64,000 nucleotides of DNA from NCBI GenBank assembly GCA_011109175.1, contig RDEW01000014.1, positions 310,001-374,000 of the forward strand, in the 5' to 3' direction. This document shows positions 7,000 to 62,649 of the stretch, in pieces; the stretch's first letter is position 1; each line of letters opens with the position of its first letter. The stretch comes from Dicyema japonicum. Lineage: Eukaryota > Animalia > Dicyemida. The translations under genes were made by a program, and so were the position numbers. A model generated the notes under the pieces. The model saw only the letters and a list, made by a program, of their open reading frames with translations, was not told the DNA's origin and ran no database searches.

Positions 7000-9900
7000 A
7001 TGAAAATGAAAATGAATTAAAACAACAGGTTATGGAATAGGTATCTATCAGTCCGCCGGTTGGCCTGACTGTTCATCCGAGTACCCCTTTTCCTTGATAT
7101 CCATCCCATTACTTGTCTAGTTAGTTAAGCATCCTGATTTGAATATCCTCCCTTACTGACATGACAAGTTTGTTCTCTTCCTCAGTCAGGCCTTCGTACA
7201 ATTTCTTCCTAAGGGATAGTTTGATCGCTGCTCGTCTTGTTTTCTCTAGTCGGGTGAGAATCCTCTCTCTCGAGGAAATGTAGAACCATTTCTCGCTTCC
7301 CTAAATAAGTCTGGGAAGAATCACATTCCGAAAGACAAAGAGCATGGTATCAACATCTAACTTAAGTCTTCTAGTGCAGAACAATGATTGCAAAGTCTTC
7401 TTCCTTCGCTCTTCGATGTCCTTCAGGTATGATCCTCTCCCATCTACTGCAATCCCCAGGTATTTCAGGGATGAAACTCTCGGTATGCGAAGAGTGTAGG
7501 GCTCATTCTGGCCTACCCGGCCTGCTTATCATCAAGTAACTAGATTTTTCCGTGGAGAGTTTCATGCCTCTCCGATCGCACCAACCCCGGACGTCGATAA
7601 AAGCTCCTAGTCGCCGCTCTGAGAGGTATGCCTTCAGAGACGAATTCAGGATTAATATGTCGTCCGCGTATATCATCAGCTTGGTCCTGACGTCTTGAGG
7701 TGACGGAAAATCTTCCATAAATATGTTGAATAACAGGGGGCATAGAATAGATCCCTGTGGCACTCCCCTTTTAAACGATATACCATCAGAATATCTTCCA
7801 CCGACTACCACGTAAGATATCATCACAGTTAAATAGTCTTTCAACCATAGGAACATTTGTTTAGATATCTTAGATCGTACAAGTTGACAAAATAAGGCTT
7901 TGTGCAAATACAGTGTCGAACGCCTTTGAGATGTCAAGGCAAACAAGGCTCAACTGGCTTTTCTTGTCAAATGTATTTGTAATTTCGTAGTTTAGTGAGT
8001 GAATACAATTTCCGCACTATCTTCCCGTACGGAAACCCCATTGGTAAGGTTGTAGAAAGTTACTCTCTTCTATTTACCGATTCAATCTCTTGAATACAAT
8101 CCGTTCCATAATCTTTGATGTAGAACATATAAGACTTATTGGCCTATAACTAAGAGGATCCTTCCTCGACTTTCCAGGTTTGAGGATCATCTTCACAATA
8201 GAACGCTTCCATAACGGAGGAACATGTCCGAGCTTAAAACTCGAGTTATACATCTTTTGTAAAACAAATAGTAGTTCATCAGACCCTTCTTTAAACATAA
8301 TCATGGGAATGATATCGAATCCAGGATCCTTGTTTTTGCACTCTCGTATAGCAGTTCTGACTTCTGCCAGAGTGATTTCCTCTACCAGACTTTCCAGATC
8401 GCCCATAGAGTAATCCATAGAATTAGATATCTCCTCTGAAAATTTCTCAGGTATAATACTAACAGGGTCAACTCCTTGTATACTTTCCAGTAGTTTTCTC
8501 TTTCCAAGGGAATTGTCCTTCCCTCTTGATCGGCCAGCACAATATTTTTTGCCTCTAAATTTCCATTAGTTAGCCTTCTGTACATTTTCCAGAAACAAGG
8601 GTTTGTCCAGTTAACTTTCGAGGCTGCATTCTTCAATTTATTTTCGGCGTTTACTTTCCAAGCTTTTTGTAATATTTTTTGAATCACATCAATTCTACTT
8701 TTCAGAGTTGTCCTGTCCCACAAATCAACACATCGTCTGTGCTTCGCCTTCAGAGTATTCCTCTCGCGAATAAGATTCCGTAATGAAGGTGGGCAAGAAT
8801 GTTTGTTCTTCAGAAAGCTTTTGGAAAAGACCTCCTTCTATATAGTCGTAGATACATCAGCATAGTATTGGATAGTTCCCAGTTAAAAACGTCCAGCTCA
8901 TTAGGTGTAGAAAAGGAATTAGTCTTCATTAGTAAGGTCTTCGATAAATAATAGCGATAATGTACCCAGTCTATCGACGAGGTATCAAAGTATAAGAAAA
9001 TATCTCCAGCAATGTTCGGCTCCAGGTTTATAGTTACTTCCTGAGGGATATGATCACTCTATGTCCCAAAGTAATCTTGGTCTGTCAACATTATCCAGTT
9101 GTGGAGACATTAAGGTCAATCCAAGCATGTCACCGCCATAGTGTGAGAAATGGTTAGGTTCCTCACGTCAAGACTTCAACTCCAATTTCGTTAACCAAAT
9201 TTGCTAGGAGTCGCCCGTCCCCGTTGTTTTTGCAACATCTTAGCATTCAGGTTTTCTACCAAGATCGACATAAGGTTTGTTTCAAAAAATTGAACAATTT
9301 TTGCAGAAGATCGGGCCAAGTCCTTAGAGTATAGCCCTCCCACGCTACAGTCGTTTCGTGTTGCAATTCTTTATGAAAAAAGATTGAGGTTCTAGTTCCA
9401 GCCGCTGTTCCATCTTTCCATGGATTGTCCACCGAGTCATATCCTTCCATATTATATTTTCTTCCGTGTTTGATTTTCGTTTCGTTAACTACCAAGACAT
9501 CCACCTTGGCATTCCTCACAAGTAGCGCTAGTTCATCAGCACTAGAGAAAATTCACACACAACAAGGTCGTGTTCCCCTCCACACTTGAGGCACCTCTTT
9601 TTCTCCTTCCAATGTGCGGCGATATGACCAATTCGTTCGCAATTGTAGCAGATAGAAGGGGGCCTCTTCATTTACTCACAAAGGATCTTGTTCGATCCAA
9701 TGTAGAAGCCACAACGTATCAGCGATGTGACCTCCGCATTACTACTAACCGAGGCTTTCGCCATTGGATAGGCTGCGATCTTCTTGATATTCGGGTTACC
9801 TTCGAGGTTGAGGGAGCCATCTTCTGAAGGTAATCAAGGAGGTCGTCTTCACTCACCCAGAAAGGGAGGTTCCTGAGGACAATCTCACATGGTTTTGTTA

Positions 9901-10299: not shown

Positions 10300-11830
10300 A
10301 GAACTAAAAGTACAAATGGAGAAAATTAAGTCAATTCCGAGGGATATTCGAAAACCAACACCCAAAATTCAGAGAAAAGTAATGTAAGAGTTAATGTTTT
10401 CCGGGACTAAATTCTGCAATTTATTATATTAAGAAAAGATAATCCACCTCAAGATATCAATCAAATTACTGATATTCTATATGCTGCACATATGGCTTTA
10501 AACTGCGAAGGTTAAGCCGCAGAGTACGTGGTCGGAGAACACTGAGAAGAAAAATCTCAAAGCTGAAAACAGAACTAGAACTTGTCAATCGTTTTTCTAG
10601 ACAGGCTCTCCCTGTGTTTGAAAAACAAAAGGTTATGGGCGTTCTTTGTGCCTATGGATACAAAAGGGCCAAAAAGGAGGAGGTTGCCAGGATTGAGACT
10701 CTACTATGTGACCTTGTCAGAATTAAGAAGAAGCAAATAGCTGTACGTTATTATTCTAGGAAGGACTTTCGTAAAAACAACTGTTGTTTTGAATTAAATC
10801 GAAGAAGATTTTATCGGAAACTATCAGCAAGCAATGAGTAACATTATATGGTTTCGATGATGAGGGTTGTATGTCGTTCTGGGAAAAAGTGTGGTCTAAA
10901 TGAAATGAGATGCCCGTGTCATATGACAGTGGTGGTAAATAAATACTGGTATTGAAGGCATGTTGCCAGAGTTCACAAATGAATTTATCCTGGATGTTAT
11001 TAAATGGCTCCCCGATTGGAAGGCATGTGGATGCGATAAGTCATACAATTTCTTAAGAAAATGGAATCTTTGCATGGATTTTTATGTACTGAGATTAATA
11101 GAATTATTAATGGGGAATATATGCCTGAAAGTTGGTTTTATACTGGAATAACCTAATAATTCCTAAAAAAGGATGATTGTGAGACTCCTAAAGACTTACA
11201 TCCTATAACATGTATGCCAACGTTATATAAACTTATTATCAAATGTGTTAATGCCAACCTCTCAGATTTTGTGGATTCGTTTAGGATATTATCTGACAAT
11301 CAGCTGGGAACGAGGAAACATTGTCAGGGCGCTAAGGAACAAGCCCTTATTAATCAATGCTTAAATAAGGAGTATGGAAACGCCCTTTATTCTGATTGGG
11401 TTGATGTGAAGAAGGCCTTTGATTCTGTTGACCATGAATTATTATTTCATGTGTTGGACTGTTTAGGAACACCCCGTTGGATTGTTAATTTTGTAAAGAC
11501 CATGGTCAAGAAGTGGACTGTAAACCTCCACTTAGATGGAAGAAGAATTGGTTCTGTAAAGCTGGGACGTGGAATTCTGCAAGGAGATTCATTATCCCTG
11601 CAACTATTTGCTATGATAATGGAACCCTTGAGCAGGATCCTTAACTCTATGTTCCCAAGACTCCAAATTAATCAGGAGTACTCTGGCTTATTCTCTAGCT
11701 TATTCTATCAATCATTTGTTGTTCATTGATGACCTAAAGATATTTGGGCTAAAAAAAGATACTTTGATTAAAATGATGAAAGTTGTTCGCGATTTCTTTC
11801 ATGTTGCCGGCTTGGAGATGAATTCGGAAA
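10300..11830 (+). mobile_element. R4/Dong-like (RLE-type) non-LTR retrotransposon RT fragment
   Basis: PITCMPTLYKL, GAKEQALIN, DVKKAFDSVDH, GILQGDSLS and a downstream LFIDDLKIF-like motif; truncated after the RT core. Confidence 0.75.
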
Positions 11831-21422: not shown

Positions 21423-22499
21423 GGTGTCCAGACATTTTGCCGACAGGAAATTCTGGTTATAAAATTCAGAGATAAAATTCAAGATAAAAAAATTTACTTA
21501 AAGGTTATGAGAAAGCGCAGTCAAAAATTCTACTGGAGTGTATTCATTCTATTTTTCAATAATACTGTTTATCCTTTTGTTCACATTTTGGTTCTTCTTT
21601 ACTTGTCTTATTGTTATTCCGGCCATCACTTGTTCTACTGTGAGCTCCCACTCAGACTGTTTTTTTCGTATTTTTGAACAAACGAAAACGGTTAAATGTT
21701 TTATAGACACTCTTTGTGAAAAAGATCTGTGCCATCCTTCAAGTGAATTCGTAGTTCTTGGGAGGCATTCTGCCTGTTGTTGTACATTCCACATTTCCAA
21801 ACTAAACAATGGTCTTCTTCTCCTTCCACATTGCAAGGCTCCGATCTATGTTGTCTCAAAATAGGTCAGAGAATCTCCCAACACGCCATCAGTCTCGTAC
21901 CATCACATAACCAATGTTCTTTCATAGAGATAAGATCAAGGTTTTTTGCTGTTGTTAATATAAGCAATCCATCACTATCGTGTAGCACAAAATCATCTCC
22001 TCTGAGAGTACTTTTAAGTTCATTAGTTAGAACATTACCGTCTTGTATTTGATCTGTACGCTGTCGTCGAACAGTACGTGCAAGGGTTTCTTTTTTGGGT
22101 AGCGCACAAGCAGCATCAATGAGGTATGTGCTTAAACAATTTTGGATAACTGTGGATGTAGTTTCTTGAAAATCTCTCGTTCTCTTCTTTATCATATTGA
22201 CGGTTTTCAGCGCATGTAAACGTCCTGAATTTGGTGGATGTTCGTGTGGTGTCATAGTTCCATTAAGTTCTTCGTTAACAGTTCTTACTCTGCCTTTGCA
22301 TTTTCCTTTCAGCTCACATCTCCAATATATGACATTGTCTCTGTCTATCCATAATGTACGCATAGCCATCATGCGGAAGTTTTCTCTTTCCACGAGTGGT
22401 TTGTGAAAATTGCATTTTTTACCGTTATTAAGATACATATTGCATTTATGCTTAATTGAATTGTCGGCTAATGGACTGTCGGCCTAATGTCCTAGTACC
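21423..22499 (-). mobile_element. Internally deleted Mutator-like (MULE) transposon with FLYWCH-type domain
   Basis: YWRCELKGKCKGR..HEH motif, WLCDGT first catalytic Asp, then an abrupt jump to LPRTTNSLEGWH. Imperfect TIRs: GGTGTCCAGACATTTTGCCGACAG and (reverse complement) GGTACTAGGACATTAGGCCGACAG. Confidence 0.8.
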
Positions 22500-29270: not shown

Positions 29271-29414
29271 ATATAAACCATCTAATTAAATGATCCCGGT
29301 TATATAAAATTTGAATTAAATTTTATAAAATTAAAATTAATTGTATTCCATGTTATATAAAATTTTAAATTAAATTGTATTTGAGTTGCGGTGTTTAAAT
29401 ATTTTTTTGTAATT

Positions 29415-32400
29415 ATGAATCTGAATTCTCAAAATTGCAATGAAATAAACAAAAAAGATATCGCACAGTTTTCATTAATTTAACTCCAAGTAGAGAATCG
29501 TATAACAATTATAATTTCACTAAGTATTCACGACCTCTTATTGACAAAGACTGGTTGAAGGGATCCTTAACTTTCCAACAACTTGAGATTGATCACTACA
29601 TTGGTTTTATACTCTAAAATTTACCACAGGCAGTGTAAACCCTTCATTTTGCAGCAAAGTTATGGCCGGATCGGTGCCTATTATAAGAATGTATGGATCT
29701 ACTGCCTTTGGGGACAGTGTCTTAGTACATGTTCATGGTTTTTATCCCTACTTCTACGTTTTGGCTCCCGTTAGTTTTAAGAGTGAAGACTGCTTTGAAT
29801 TCAAGGTAAAATGGTGTTCTACTTTTAGTCAGCGTTAAATTGTCAATTAGCAAAGTCTTTTAAGAACCTTAAAGATCATGAATTCTGCGTGCTTGACGTT
29901 GGAGTTGAATATAAACAAAGAATGAACTTATTGTTTATTTTAGGTATTTTTGGATATCAGGGAGATATAAAAACTCAGTTCATTCGTATTACACTGACGA
30001 ACATAAAGTATGTAAATTCAGCTAGAAAACTGCTTGAGGATGGATTTGCTTTCAATAACTGGGATCCTTTAAATTATTATAAGACTTTCGAATCTGATGT
30101 TGCTTTTGAGATTCGGTTGGTCTGTTGGTGATGATTTTAGCTTCATGATTGATATGAACATGACCGGTTGCTGTTGGTGTGAGATTCAACCTCAAAATTT
30201 CTCAGCAAGATCAGGGTTCACCCGTTCTTCGCGCTGTTCCATAGAACTTGACGTGAATTTCTCCAATATTATGGTCCACGACTCCAATGATAGTCAGTGG
30301 GAGGCCATTGCTCCTCTTCGTATTTTGAGTTTTGACATTGAATGTGCTGGTCGTAAAGGTTATAGTATATTTATTTCAAGGAATATTTCCACAGCCAAGT
30401 CTTGATCCTGTAATCCAGATAGCAAACGTCCTTAAATCGTACAATGCTGAAAACACGACAGAAACAAATATAATTTTTACCCTTTCTACTTGTGCACCCA
30501 TTTTCGGAGCAAATGTATTGTGCTTTGAGACAGAAGCCGAATTATTGACTGTTTTCACGTTTAAATGTTATTTGACAGAGCTGGACCCTTTTTATTCAAA
30601 ACTATGATCCAGATATCATTACTGGGTATAATATTGAAAACTTTGACTTATCGTATTTAATATCAAGGGCTGAAGCTCTCAAATTGATGAGTTTTCCCTT
30701 TCTTGGTAGAATAAAGGAATTAAAGTTTGTTTTTGCTAATAACGCTAGATCTTCGGTAAGGGATTCAACTTTTCAGTCAAAGCAAATGGGGAGGCATGAC
30801 TTTAAATCGATAAATATGGAAGGCAGGGTTGTTCTTGATGTTTACTGGGTTTTTATTGAATTTATTCAAGATTCTTATTAGGAATCACAAACTCCGCTCA
30901 TATTCCCTAAATTCAGTTGCTTTCCATTTCTTAGGGGAGCAGAAGGAAGATGTCAAGCATTCTATCATCACTGACTTACAGGAATTATTATTTATTAAAA
31001 GTAGAACGGTGATGATCAGACACGTAGAAGACTGGCTGTTTATTGCTTGAAGGATGCACGATTGCCGCTAAAATTGCTAGAAAAATTGATGTTAATTGTC
31101 AATCATGTTGAAATGGCACGTGTTACCGGAGTCCCTTTTTCATATTTAATCAAACGTGGACAACAAATTAAAGTAGTTTCTCAGCTTTATCGTAAAGTAT
31201 GGATGAATTTAACTCAATAGTGTCGTGCTTGTGGTATTTTGATCCCCAATGTTAAACAAAGTTCAGGCGACGAGGAATTTACCGGTGCTACTGTGATTGA
31301 ACCGATTAAGGGGTTTGTTAGTAGTTATTGTAGCTTCTATAATACGCCGATTGTCACTTTGGACTTTACTTCCCTTTATCCCTCAATAATGATTGCTCAT
31401 AATCTATGCTATTCCACTCTCGTACTTAGTTATAATGAAGAGTTTAATGGTTTAAATAGCTTAGACTTTCTCCCGAGGATTATGAAATATCTCCTACTGG
31501 CAATAAATTTGTCCGGTCGAATTTAAAAAAGGGAATTTTACCAGAAATCCTTGAAGACTTACTGAAGGCTAGAAAAAAGTTTTTATCAATTTTTGATTTT
31601 CAGAGCCAAGACAGAACTGAAAAAAGAAAAGGATAATTTTCGGAAACAAATTCTCGATGGAAGACAACTCGCCTTAAAAATGTCTGCAAACTCTGTTTAT
31701 GGATTTACAGGAGCTCAAAATGGTCGTCTTCCCTGTTTGGAAATATCTCAAGTTATTAAACTATTAATCTTAGAGTGTCACATCATACGGTAGAAATATG
31801 ATAGAATTGACCAAAAATGAGATTGAAAGTGGGTTTAACATGCGTAATGGCTATGATTATGACACTCAAGTATTTTCATTTCCATTATTTATAAGGTAAT
31901 TTATGGAGATACGGATTCTGTTATGTGCAATTTTGGCTACGAAGACATTGGTCGAACCATGAAAATTGCCTTTAAAGCTGCTAGTTTTGTATCCTCAAAA
32001 TTTCGCCGCCCAATTAACTTAGATTTTGAAAAGGTGATTGCTGGTTATAGTGACAGATTTATTACCCATATCTTCTTATTAACAAGAAACGTTACGCAGG
32101 CGTTGTGTATCCGGCTTCTGCATACTCTGAAGGAAAGACTAATTATTCGTCTGAGTTAGTGGACTGCAAAGGTATTGAGAATGTTAGGAGGGACAATTGC
32201 CCGTTAGTTGCCAATCTAATTTCGAACTGCTTGAATATTATCTTATTCAGAGGTTTTCATGAATTTGTTTATGCTATTAGAGATCCGGACGCGGCAGTCA
32301 ATCATACTAAGCAAATAATATCGGATTTGTTGAGAAATCAGATTGACATCTCCCATCTTGTTATTTCACGTGAACTCACTCGTAATGAGGACGAATACTC

Positions 32401-33143
32401 TGGAAAGCAGGCTCACGTAGAATTGGCCGCTCGGTTATATTAAAATATTGATTAAAGAATGAGGAAAAGAGACGAAGGGACTGCCCCCAAACTCGGTGAT
32501 AGAGTTCCATACGTTATAATTGCATCTGCCAAAGGGCTGCCGCATACATGAAATCAGAGGTAATCAATTAGATCTTATATGAAGGATCCCTTGTATGTCT
32601 TGGAGAACAATGTTCCCATAGACACTGACTACTATCTCAACAATCAAATTAAAAAGCCTCTTCTGAGAATATTCGAACCCATACTCGGTTCAAAGACCGA
32701 ATCAATACTTTTCTGTATTCTTCTGATGAATTCCTAGCCGGAGATCACGCTAATCAGAAGAAAATCGTTACAACAAAAGTTGGCGGGCTAATGAACTTTG
32801 TCAAAAAATCTTCGTCGTGTCTTAAATGCCGGTCTTTGATAAGAAATGGTAAGCTTATTAGTTATTAGCAAGACACTGATCGTGCGTTATGTAACAACTG
32901 TGAGGTTTTAAGAAATCAGTTAAGCGAAAAATATGTTCATCGTTTGAGAATGCAAGAGGAAAGGTTTTCAAAACTATGGGTTCAATGTCAGCGGTGTCAA
33001 GGTAGTTTTCACGATGAAGTGATTTGCTCTAAGTATTATGATAAGTGTTATTTAGTCGTGACTGTCCGATTTTTTATATGAGAATAAAAGCCCGTAAAGA
33101 CTTGAAGGAGTCAAACGATATTTTAAATCGTTTTGATTGGTAA
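29415..33143 (+). CDS. POLD1: DNA polymerase delta catalytic subunit (about 23 micro-introns)
   Basis: [57 protein letters not shown] and C-terminal CysA/CysB cysteines. Introns 21-30 nt; one -1 frameshift at 32534-32536. Confidence 0.97.
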
Positions 33144-33199
33144 TTTTTGATGTCAATTTAAAATAAATTTGTACCATTTTTTATTTTATTGTTTCCTGT

Positions 33200-35950
33200 A
33201 TTTTGGATAATTTGTGTATATTATTTTTTTGAGCGGATAGTAAACGAAACAATGAGTCACGAGTAAAAATAATTAATTTATAACGCCGGTCTAACTTAAT
33301 CTCCTCTTTTTGGGGCCAACCTCTATTGCCCGTATAGGTATGTTCAAACGACGCACACCCACATTCAGAGACTAGCCTGGGTTGACATTCCGTACCATCT
33401 TTCTCCTCACCAGGCATCAATACTCTATGCCACCCATCTGTCTACACGCTATCCAGAGTCTTCTGCAGTACTAATGTTTTCAAACATGAATTCACCGTTT
33501 CCTCCTCCTTGAGGAAAGCCAGGTGGCCCTTGAAGAATCTTATATCCATACTGATCGTCGTGTCTAAACGAATCTCACAAATTTATTTGCGACAACAGAT
33601 TGGACTGATTGGGTTTTCAGTTTCTTGGTTTTTCTTATTCCATATTGACGGTAGAAACATAGGTGTAATCATCCGACTACTTCGTTATGCCGCCTGAGAT
33701 ATGAGCTATTCAGCATTCGACCACACCTAGTTGCAAAGTGATCGACGGTCTTCTTTTCTGAGTTACAATGTCCGCACTTAGTTGTTACGATCCTGAACTA
33801 AACAAAGCCTTCCCTCGGTTATAGGGGAGTGATTTCCATGCTCAAGCATGTGTCTTTCAAACACTGAAATAAAATAGAGTGCGGTGGTTTCTTCTCATTT
33901 TCTCCCAATAGATATTCATGCTGTTTCTATCAATTTCGACATTTCCAAGTCCTTCACATTTTCAATGTTGTACTTTTGAGAGATGAATTCTACGACTGTG
34001 GCTATGTGTGTTTTCTTTGAATTAATGACCCGTAGTATTCCGCTCTTCTTAGGAAGTAATTTTCCTTATGTTCCAAGTCACCATAAAATTTGAAGAGCAT
34101 TCGTTCTGCTTTGTTACAGACAGGCTCAAGGCCTTTTGCAAATTTATTTCTTATAAAGTTTTATTTTTTTTATTAATTAATTTTTAAACAGTGGAAGTCA
34201 GGTAGTTGCCGCCCTCACTGCGTGGCTGATAAAAAAAGTGAGAGTGCATATTCGTTCATTACCTTAACAGGTTAACTGAGTTTAAATCAGTTTTTGTCAA
34301 ATTTTCAATACGCGTAGATGCTTCATAGATTTTATTCATAATTTCTCCTTTAAGGACATTACTGTTCTTATCCTCAAGGACTCCCAAATATTGGTATCCA
34401 TCTAATCCATCGAGGAAACGAGCTTTCCCAGACATGTACTTCAGGTTTGTTGCAGAATTGTCAAAGTTTCTCTCCAATCCGACTGCATCAAAACGATTGA
34501 ACTCCTTCTATATTATTTCCATTGAATCACTGAGGAGAAAATAACTTTATATTTTCCATAGAAAAGGTGATTAGTTGCATATGTTGGTTCTCCATTTCCA
34601 GGACTTCCCATCGTTACTTTCGGGAATTTTCCGTTCAGCAGTCGACTAAGAAAGTTCATTAACAAAGCAAAGATATGCGGTGAGAGAGTCCCCCTGTAGA
34701 ATTCCTCTTTATTTTAACTTCTCGTCGTTTTGCTTTCCAAATTTAGCTGCCATTGCGTGACAAGTTTCTGAATAAATCTGACAATCAAGCAGGGAAGACC
34801 AGTGAATCTCCTCACAAAGATTTCCACGACTCGAATGAAGTTTTTGAGTAATCAGTTATAGACTCCGTCACAGACATATGCTTTCCAATTTGGAAGCATC
34901 CTGATAGAATCAGTGATTGCCTCCTTCGTAAAATCACCATAAGAGTTCTGATCCAGTCACTCTTTTGCTAACCAAGAAATGCTATCCTTTCGTTCACCCT
35001 TATTCCAAATGTTAGTCCAAAAAGGAAGACATTCCTCCCCATTAAAATTAAGCACCAACTTCTTATCTCCACTGATATTTCTATAGAATCGTCTTTATTC
35101 AATTCGAATTACTAGTTGGCTCGTCTAAACCCCTTTCTCGATTCATAAACTCTCAATTTTTTGTCAAAAAGTTTGATTTGATCACGAAAATAGGAAGCAA
35201 TCCTTTTGAATTCTCCCCTAAAGTCATATGAACACAAGGTATAGGGTATTTCTTAGTCAAATTGCTACTCGTTCATTTCACCAGCCGTTTGAATTTTATC
35301 AAGTTGTTGCTTAAGTTTAGTGAGTTTGTATTTCATAGACTCTTCCAAATTACCGTTAGTGCTATTCTTCTTGGTAAGCCTCTCATAAGTCCACTACCAA
35401 GCATATATGATATCAGTGATATCGTTGATATCCAAACTAAGCAAGGAATCAACTGCATTAGTTCCATTCAAAATATTTTTCTAAGTATTTTTTTCTGGAA
35501 TCTTCGTTGTAGGAATTACGAATAGTTTTTTCTCGTTTTGACTACTTTCCCAATTTGGCAGCAGAACTCCTCAAAGCATTTTCCAAAATTTGAAATTTCA
35601 GCCTTCTATGTTTTCTTGACTGGAAGGCCACAGATTGATTCACTCGACTTTGAAGAGAGTAAGCTCTTAAATTTGGTAACGGATTTCGATGTCCCACATC
35701 TTAAGTTAAAAGCGTTCGTAATCACACCATGGGAAATTTTCTTAAATCTGGAATTTGCAGACACAACGACTTTCACAGCCCATTGTTTCCGGTCCACAGT
35801 GTGAACTTTGTCAACTAGGCATTGTACAAAAAAAGAAGATGTGCTTTAAATTCAATATTGACAACTTCTTGCGTCTTGGGCAATTCATCAACCACATTCT
35901 CTACGGTCCTATTGTTTTTTCTTTTACTAACTTTCGTAAATAGATCGAAT
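33200..35950 (-). mobile_element. Decayed R4/Dong-like non-LTR retrotransposon (RT, CCHC finger, RLE)
   Basis: GDSL, YQYLGVLEDKNSN and CGHCNSEKKTVDHFATRCGRML..RRHNEVVRMIHL; appears to be in at least two pieces. Confidence 0.75.
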
Positions 35951-54249: not shown

Positions 54250-55100
54250 GGTTTTCGTGCTCAAGTCCTGCAGGTCATTATAGAAATTTATTTCCAAAGA
54301 TCACAGTTAAAGACAAAAACAAGAAATTATGTGATCCCGGCGAATTTTATTAGGGCTCTCAGCTTGGCCCGGTGGTCTTCCCTCGATCCAACACAAGCAC
54401 GCAGTAGACGGGTGATCCTCTGGTATCGTTGAGTTTGGCCTCCTTTTTTTTCTTATTAGGTCTTCCAAGGTGGTAGGTATAGAATTTAGATCGCCTTTGA
54501 TCCAGTTTTCTATCACGGAAAACGCTCTTTTTTGGGTTGCCGCAATTCTCTGGGCATTCGTCCAAAAAATTGAGGGGCCCCATGATACATATGATATGCA
54601 TGGCTCGACCTCATTATCCTCATGCTCCGGAGTCGGGATATCATTCAAGAAAAGGTTGAAGAGTATAGGGGATAGAGGAGATCCTTGGGGTATTACATTT
54701 GGAATTAAACGGAAGTTCGACTGTAGGTTTCCCAAACAGACCCGTTTTCTTCGTCCACTGAAGAAATTCACCAGCCAGAGTTTGAAATTCTCAGGTATAT
54801 CCGTATGATAGATTTTCCTGGTGAGTTTTTTCTTTGGGATGGAGTCGAATACCTTGTGAATGTCTACAGAACATAGAATTGTCTTTTTGTGCCTGGTTTG
54901 TTGGTGAACCCCGAGCGAATAAAATCACTCAGGGATAGTAGGTGGGTATCCGTCGAGTGAAGGGATTTAAATCCGTGTTGGAATGATTTCTCTGAGATTG
55001 TTCCTCTGATCTTCTGAAGAACTGGTTTCCCAGATTTTCGACATTGAAGATAGCAACGATACCGGTCTGAATGATGCCGGGTCGTTTTTTGGTTTTCTCA
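54250..55100 (-). mobile_element. Jockey-like RT fragment
   Basis: IPQGSPLSPILFNLFLNDIP and VDIHKVFDSI motifs. Confidence 0.65.
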
Positions 55101-61545: not shown

Positions 61546-62593
61546 ATGAGGGATTCGAAAAATATAAAGGAGATTGACGTATGGATTGAACAACTGTTTA
61601 TGTGTAATCAACTTTCTGAGGACCAAGTCAAAGTTATGTGTTCCAAAGTTTACTCACTCTAACCTTTTTAGGCCATCGAGATCCTCAGTAACGAAAATAA
61701 TGTCCAAAACGTTTCCTGTCCTGTTACCGTTTGTGGAGACATTCATGGACAGTTCTACGACCTCATGGAACTCTTCGAAATTGGTGGAAAACTTCCAGAT
61801 ATCAACTACCTATTCTTAGGGGACTACGTGGACCGTGGATACTATTCTGTGGAGACCGTATCCCTTCTTGTTGCCTTAAAGGTGACTCTATTCTTATTTT
61901 CAGGTTCGGTACCCCGACAGGATTACTATACTTCGCGGAAATCACGAAAGTAGACAGACTACCCAAGTTTACGGATTTTACGATGAATGTCTACGGAAAT
62001 ACGGGGGACCTTCTGTGTGGCAGCATTTTACTCAGCTTTTCGACTACCTTCCACTGTCGGCACTCATCAGTGGCCAGGTTCTTGTCCTCTCATTTCCAGA
62101 TGTTTTGCCTCCATGGAGGACTATCTCCATCTATTACCTGCCTAGACAACATTAGGGCTATTGACAGAATCCAGGAGGTCCCCCACGAAGGCCCGATGTG
62201 TGATCTTCTGTGGTCGGACCCCGATGATAGTTCTGCTTGGGGACAGTCTCCACGTGGCGCTGGCTTTACTTTCGGACCGGACGTTTCCAGCCATTTTATA
62301 GCTTTAAATTCCCTCTCAACTATAGTACGTGCTCACCAGTTGGTCATGGAGGTTAAGCTTTGGTTGTCTTCTTACAGGGGTACAACTGGTGCCACGATCA
62401 CAAGGTGGTGACCATTTTTAGTGCCCCGAATTACTGCTACCGGTGCAATAATCAGGCGGCTTTGATGTGCCTGGATGATAATATGTCGGATATTTTGTAG
62501 TTTTTGGTTTTTATGGGTAGTATTCAGTTTGACCCTGCTCCACGGCAAGGTGAGCCGTTGGTCACTCGCAGAACTCCTGACTATTTTCTTTGA
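61546..62593 (+). CDS. PPP2CA: Serine/threonine protein phosphatase 2A catalytic subunit
   Basis: [27 protein letters not shown] and C-terminal TPDYFL*. Five GT-AG introns of 24, 22, 22, 26 and 24 nt; no frameshift. The A/B paralog label is only nominal. Confidence 0.97.
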
Positions 62594-62649
62594 GCGTTGC
62601 TAATTTGACTATCATTTTATGTGAGGATACTTTTATTAGTAAAATCAAT

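Follow-up and report, generated by a model that had tools for sequence, protein, structure and literature searches.

The window analyzed here is a 64,000-nucleotide (64-kb) stretch of the genome of Dicyema japonicum, with a G+C content of about 36% (the published value for the species is 36.7%). It contains a gene for DNA polymerase delta (POLD1) on the forward strand, whose coding region runs from an ATG at 29415 to a stop codon at 33141-33143 (29415-33143), as defined by protein alignment refined with the read data. A second gene on the forward strand, at 61560-62600, encodes a PP2A/PP4-like serine/threonine phosphatase with an ORF of 304 amino acids after the removal of five introns, as judged by homology. 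Four other ORFs (7503-7946, minus strand; 11214-11729, plus strand; 54307-54771, minus strand; 21866-22438, minus strand) gave matches in Pfam, three to RVT_1 and one, weakly, to the FLYWCH zinc finger. The reverse-transcriptase (RVT_1) match of 54307-54771 falls below Pfam's curated cutoff. The window is retroelement-rich, in line with the repeat content of roughly 49% reported for D. japonicum.

We modeled POLD1 by spliced dynamic programming, aligning a full-length homologue (P0025) with positions 29300-33300 and allowing any intron ends at a penalty. Logan contigs of four sequencing runs were placed on the same interval. Three of the runs (X1, X2 and X3, with word depths of about 420, 32 and 19) are colinear genomic DNA from a sample of 2019 (S1), and the fourth (X5) is RNA from a sample of 2017 (S2) that belongs to another study. 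The X1-X3 contigs were built independently of the assembly, yet probably overlap the data behind it. Both samples pool many animals, and rare variants are lost from Logan contigs. The X3 run contains remnants of Nextera mate-pair adapters.

The resulting model of POLD1 has 23 micro-introns of 21-28 nt, 21 of them with GT..AG ends and two with GA..AG ends, and a product of 1058 amino acids after two read-based base corrections. The 23 donors match the metazoan consensus CAG/GTAAGT at 2-6 of 9 positions, and the two GA donors do so at 4-5 of 9. Two introns proposed in the alignments were revised. The first spliced alignment had placed a 17-nt intron with TT..AG ends at 31443-31459; it was rejected, and the depth of X5 fits a 23-nt GT..AG intron at 31442-31464. 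Likewise, an intron of 30 nt (32253-32282) gave way to a 28-nt one with GT..AG ends (32253-32280), together with a T that is missing from the window at 32240.

The assembly was merged from Illumina and PacBio RS II contigs (PMC6736024). An earlier note on this DNA, made from the sequence alone, had remarked that the assembly shows other single-base losses, and the contigs do insert bases at four places in this 4-kb gene. A T is put in at 29937 by the X1-X3 contigs, a T at 32240-32241 by X1 and X2 but not by X3 (a single-base loss or an allele), a G behind 32533 by all four runs (32533-32534, where the window has GGG for GGGG), and a C at 32719 by the short-read DNA contigs. Each of the four shortens a run of one base or takes away a base beside an identical one. 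The loss at 32533 shifts the reading frame of POLD1 in the window and had been predicted beforehand from the spliced protein alignment. With the T at 32240 in place, the intron that follows is the 28-nt one, and the net 27 letters left out by X5 correspond to 28 minus 1. Because the X1-X3 contigs correct these four losses, they are not copies of the assembly.

Two further observations concern sequence variation in this gene. In X1, a second POLD1-like contig (record 3; 2964 nt) was placed at 30289-31421 with a depth of 105, compared to 420 for the major contigs. It has 73-96% identity in four exon blocks with similar spacing between the blocks, which points to the presence of another dicyemid species, or of a very divergent haplotype, in this host sample. 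At 30312-30336, five positions within 25 nt of the window depart from the major contigs in every one of the four runs. At these five positions, it agrees with the minor variant of depth 105 in X1, and the assembly may have a small chimeric patch here. The homologues obtained in protein searches with an 83-amino-acid piece of POLD1 were all at or below 76% identity, and a search with a 64-amino-acid exon gave no match above 81% identity and no dicyemid fragment.

The first of the two GA..AG introns is a segment of 23 nt at 30982-31004 (forward strand, phase 0, 87% A+T). The window reads TTACAG/GAATTATTATTTATTAAAAGTAG/AACGGT at 30976-31010, and the wider context is ATCATCACTGACTTACAG/GAATTATTATTTATTAAAAGTAG/AACGGTGATGATCAG. 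The segment separates the Q and N codons of the conserved POLD1 stretch IITDLQ/NG(D/N). The upstream exon (30871-30981, forward strand; translated piece used for alignment, 30883-30981) aligns to residues 467-498 of human POLD1 and 406-437 of yeast Pol3, and has no mismatches to X5. The downstream exon (31005-31196, forward strand) consists of 64 codons, ends in QLYRK, and aligns to human residues 499-561 and yeast residues 438-501. The exon junction thus falls at human Q498/N499 and yeast 437/438, within a gap-free, highly conserved stretch of the alignment, so that the split of a conserved sequence by exactly 23 nt, as claimed in the earlier note, was borne out. Because its length is not a multiple of three and stops are present in the downstream frame, the segment must be removed to make POLD1, as had also been proposed.

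The segment resembles the micro-introns of dicyemids (about 20-30 nt, A+T-rich) and its own neighbors, the other 22 introns of POLD1 being 21-28 nt long and 57-88% A+T. Its 3' end is AAAAGTAG, with the AG terminus at 31004, and an AAAA run lies 5-8 nt upstream of the 3' end. AG is repeated at both boundaries, such that placements with GG..TA or AG..GT ends give the identical mRNA; only with GA..AG ends does the intron have a standard acceptor. No features of U12-type introns were found at 30982-31004. The donor is GAATTATT rather than /RTATCCTT, there is no branch site like TCCTTAAC, and we rejected the reading as a minor (U12-type) intron. RNA editing was also considered and rejected.

Removals with GT..AG or GC..AG ends that keep the reading frame around 30982 would take out 8, 11, 29, 44 or 53-104 nt. 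Those that bypass the insert (53-104 nt) lose at least 10 conserved residues, and the shorter ones leave residues derived from the insert that distort the conserved stretch. The statement that no GT or GC donor yields the conserved junction therefore holds. Removals of this kind are also excluded by X5, which lacks 23 letters here.

The GA donor at 30982 is present in the genome and is not an assembly error. The contigs of X1, X2 and X3 all read GA at 30982-30983, with zero gaps, mismatches or inserted bases. Record 4 of X1 spans 30455-31769 with no gaps and two mismatches (30865 and 31523), record 18 of X3 spans 30232-31583 with no gaps, and record 13 of X2 spans 30232-33283 with three gaps and 13 mismatches, all away from the donor. 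The earlier note had cautioned that a GTAATT donor from which one T had been lost would look like a GA donor; the intron would then be an ordinary one of 24 nt with GT-AG ends. The merging of two kinds of contigs in the assembly and the four single-base losses in the same gene lend this explanation some initial plausibility, but the DNA contigs dispose of the caveat, since they place all gaps and mismatches elsewhere and insert no base at 30982-30983. Moreover, the real losses affect runs of the same base or neighbors of an identical base, which a T lost between G and A would not, and the DNA contigs likewise bear out a second GA donor in the gene, at 29920, without a mismatch. We consider an artefact of assembly extremely unlikely.

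Removal of the segment from the transcript was assessed using X5, in which a single contig of 3250 nt covers 29376-33177; it shows 16 mismatches and 554 gap letters and represents an intron-free transcript. The span of the window exceeds the contig by 552 letters, which matches 553 letters left out and one G put in; 553 letters left out plus the inserted G also give the 554 gap letters. The depth of X5 in each 134-nt bin is the depth of the contig (36.5) multiplied by the fraction of the bin that is covered. In the bin 30908-31041, the depth was 30.2 compared to 36.5 for the contig, indicating that 111 of the 134 positions were covered and 23 letters were absent. None of the 16 mismatches falls in this bin. 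The intron model fits all 30 bins, with a total of 553 letters left out. The mRNA rebuilt from 29376-33177 by removing the 23 introns and making the two base corrections has 3250 nt, equal to X5, and contains one long ORF. The absence of the 23 letters from this transcript further supports the claim that they are taken out.

We infer the exact cut, 30981/31005, from the arithmetic of the depths combined with the conservation of the protein and the open reading frame. There is no GT..AG or GC..AG 23-mer in the bin 30908-31041. Removal of 23 letters from different positions in this bin can give 25 distinct mRNAs that are free of stops, and the sequence IITDLQNGDDQ is restored only when the removal starts at 30980-30982. 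Only the spliced form was seen in X5, at a depth of 36, and the removal of the segment at 30982-31004 from POLD1 mRNA is as efficient as that of the 21 GT introns of the gene.

The repeated AG that flanks the segment, a repeat of 2 nt that allows the cut to be written equally as AG..GT or GG..TA, raises the question of removal by a process other than splicing. Programmed DNA elimination between the AG repeats would be one such process, and unusual circular DNAs have been reported in dicyemids (PMC6543705); template switching by reverse transcriptase would be another. The joined form is absent from the DNA contigs of X1-X3, and X5 is without all 23 introns alike, with the spliced form alone at a depth of 36. 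Template switching would not dominate at a repeat as short as 2 nt. In addition, the site is that of an ancestral intron (see below), and the size and composition of the segment match those of the neighboring introns. Removal in either of these ways is highly improbable, and removal by the spliceosome would account for the segment.

The DNA and the RNA were from different samples, which differ at 16 of 3250 positions (about 0.5%). It is conceivable that GA is present in the DNA population whereas the mRNA comes from individuals or alleles with GT, which would leave the GA copies unspliced and without function. Since the animals were pooled and the contigs hide rare variants, a minor GT allele, or GT in sample S2, is possible. 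On the other hand, POLD1 is an essential replication gene present in a single copy, and its major allele would then be null at two separate introns. The chance that both donors differ between the samples is approximately 2.5e-5 at a divergence of about 0.5%, and no alternative contig carrying a T at the 30982 or the 29920 donor is listed among the four runs. A difference between alleles or strains is thus a very unlikely explanation, though slightly less so than the two considered above. Taken together, the segment at 30982-31004 is, with high probability, a genuine spliced intron with GA-AG ends.

The second GA..AG micro-intron of POLD1 (29920-29943, forward strand, phase 1) is 24 nt long in the window and 25 nt long in the contigs of X1-X3, which add a T behind 29937 (GAATGAACTTATTGTTTATTTTTAG after correction). 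The need to splice it is hidden in the uncorrected window, because a segment of 24 nt is in frame. Among the positions listed for X5, 24 letters are left out at 29920. The DNA contigs read GA at 29920-29921, with record 1 of X1 covering the site without a mismatch, and the sole alternative placement of the intron has AA..GG ends. Both GA introns start with GAAT, in the contexts CAG/GAA (30982) and AAA/GAA (29920). The GA donor at 30982 is therefore not a one-off. The proposal of the earlier note that the spliceosome of this organism accepts GA donors in ultra-short introns gains support from X5 and the DNA contigs at two sites in one gene.

A third candidate with GA..AG ends, an in-frame segment of 27 nt at 32133-32159 from the spliced alignment, was rejected. 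X5 retains this segment, so it is coding; it encodes an insertion in POLD1 that is specific to the lineage (EGKTNYSSE-like). This example warns against calling GA..AG introns from sequence alone.

GA donors thus make up two of the 23 introns of POLD1. The five micro-introns of the phosphatase gene (61648-61671, 61882-61903, 62078-62099, 62352-62377 and 62497-62520, forward strand), placed by homology, are all GT..AG, and none required a non-canonical donor. With these included, the frequency of GA donors is 2 of 28, with a 95% interval of about 1-24%.

The position of the 30982-31004 intron was compared with ORF fragments from the genomes of other eukaryotes. In six fragments that show shared boundaries of the 64-codon exon (P0151, P0152, P0154, P0159, P0167 and P0215), homology begins at NG and ends at RK followed by V, the codon that a GTN donor would give. 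These common boundaries indicate that the exon is old, and that both introns that flank it (30982-31004 and 31197-31220) are at old positions common to unrelated eukaryotes. The shared positions fit the conservation of exon/intron structure that has been reported in dicyemids.

In the simplest history, 30982-31004 would be an ordinary intron of ancestral origin in which a GT donor became GA, a change that D. japonicum tolerates. The donor logo of D. japonicum is 'GTa' and the acceptor is 'AG', and a few A residues upstream probably serve as the branch site (PMC13644364). A likely reason for the tolerance is that the lineage would already have had its donor information reduced to about three bases. 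The intron would be defined mainly by the G at +1, the terminal AG, a narrow range of lengths and an A+T-rich body, and pairing of U1 to a long donor consensus would count hardly at all. The catalytic steps would also have to accept an A at +2. A scan of the 64-kb window with Rfam found no snRNA genes.

Few bases in eukaryotic genes are as strongly conserved as the U at +2 of the donor. An A at this position usually stalls splicing after the first step in yeast and mammals, and routine use of GA donors is known in few lineages only. Dinoflagellates, as a lineage, accept G-A and G-C donors with AG acceptors; unlike D. japonicum, they are protists, their introns are much longer, and their splice sites have a different context. 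Among animals, the copepod Eurytemora affinis and the tunicate Oikopleura dioica have introns with GA-AG ends (Frey and Pucker 2020, PMC7072748). GA-AG accounted for 3.2% of RNA-supported splice sites, a figure given after both species had been introduced, and the GA in these species typically has AG upstream and A downstream; a variant of U1 was proposed for E. affinis (PMC7072748). The two GA introns of D. japonicum are like these in having GA at +1/+2, an AG 3' end and an overall appearance of the U2 type, with CAG/GAA at the main site in POLD1. They differ in belonging to another phylum, in their length of 23-25 nt, and in having almost no donor consensus. The share of GA is at the percent level in E. 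affinis and O. dioica, whereas for D. japonicum the frequency comes from a single gene (2 of 23).

A different kind of GA 5' splice site, that of human FGFR genes, is reported to depend on a canonical GT six nucleotides upstream (cited in PMC7072748). Both cases show efficient splicing at a GA donor in a gene of an animal. However, the 28 nt that precede 30982 contain no GT, the nearest being at 30952-30953, and we rejected an FGFR-type reading of this donor given that the upstream sequence, ATCATCACTGACTTACAG, is without GT.

Micro-introns of dicyemids have been described several times (Aruga 2007, PMC2222250; Lu 2019, PMC6736024; Zverkov 2019, PMC6543705; Hadjez 2026, PMC13644364). The introns of POLD1 are like the published ones in length (21-28 nt), A+T-richness, donor information in the first three bases, a plain AG and conserved positions, but the published descriptions and logos give a GT donor, and POLD1 has two GA donors. 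We found no report of GA-AG or other non-canonical sites in the dicyemid literature covered. Dicyemids are a new lineage, in another animal phylum, for a known kind of non-canonical intron.

The mapping program TopHat and the gene predictor AUGUSTUS are not known to admit junctions other than GT-AG, GC-AG and AT-AC. Both were used to make the annotation of D. japonicum (PMC6736024), and this pipeline probably could not call GA introns, which would explain why such introns went unnoticed in this species. Gene models will require splice-aware mapping that allows non-canonical ends, together with a polished assembly; otherwise POLD1 and other essential genes appear broken.

It is tentatively possible, and we would give it somewhat less than an even chance, that GA donors are a regular feature of dicyemids at the percent level, that a gene set limited to canonical junctions breaks or misses genes, and that part of the reported gene reduction is an effect of annotation. 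If true, the gene set would systematically break or miss genes with GA introns, with uncorrected single-base losses contributing, and part of the extreme gene reduction that has been reported could be an annotation effect. GA would be tolerated where micro-introns are recognized by length, composition, the G at +1 and the terminal AG, with little consensus paired to U1. The GA introns of POLD1 link relaxed donor recognition to extreme miniaturization of introns, and make D. japonicum a natural system for the minimal information that defines an intron.
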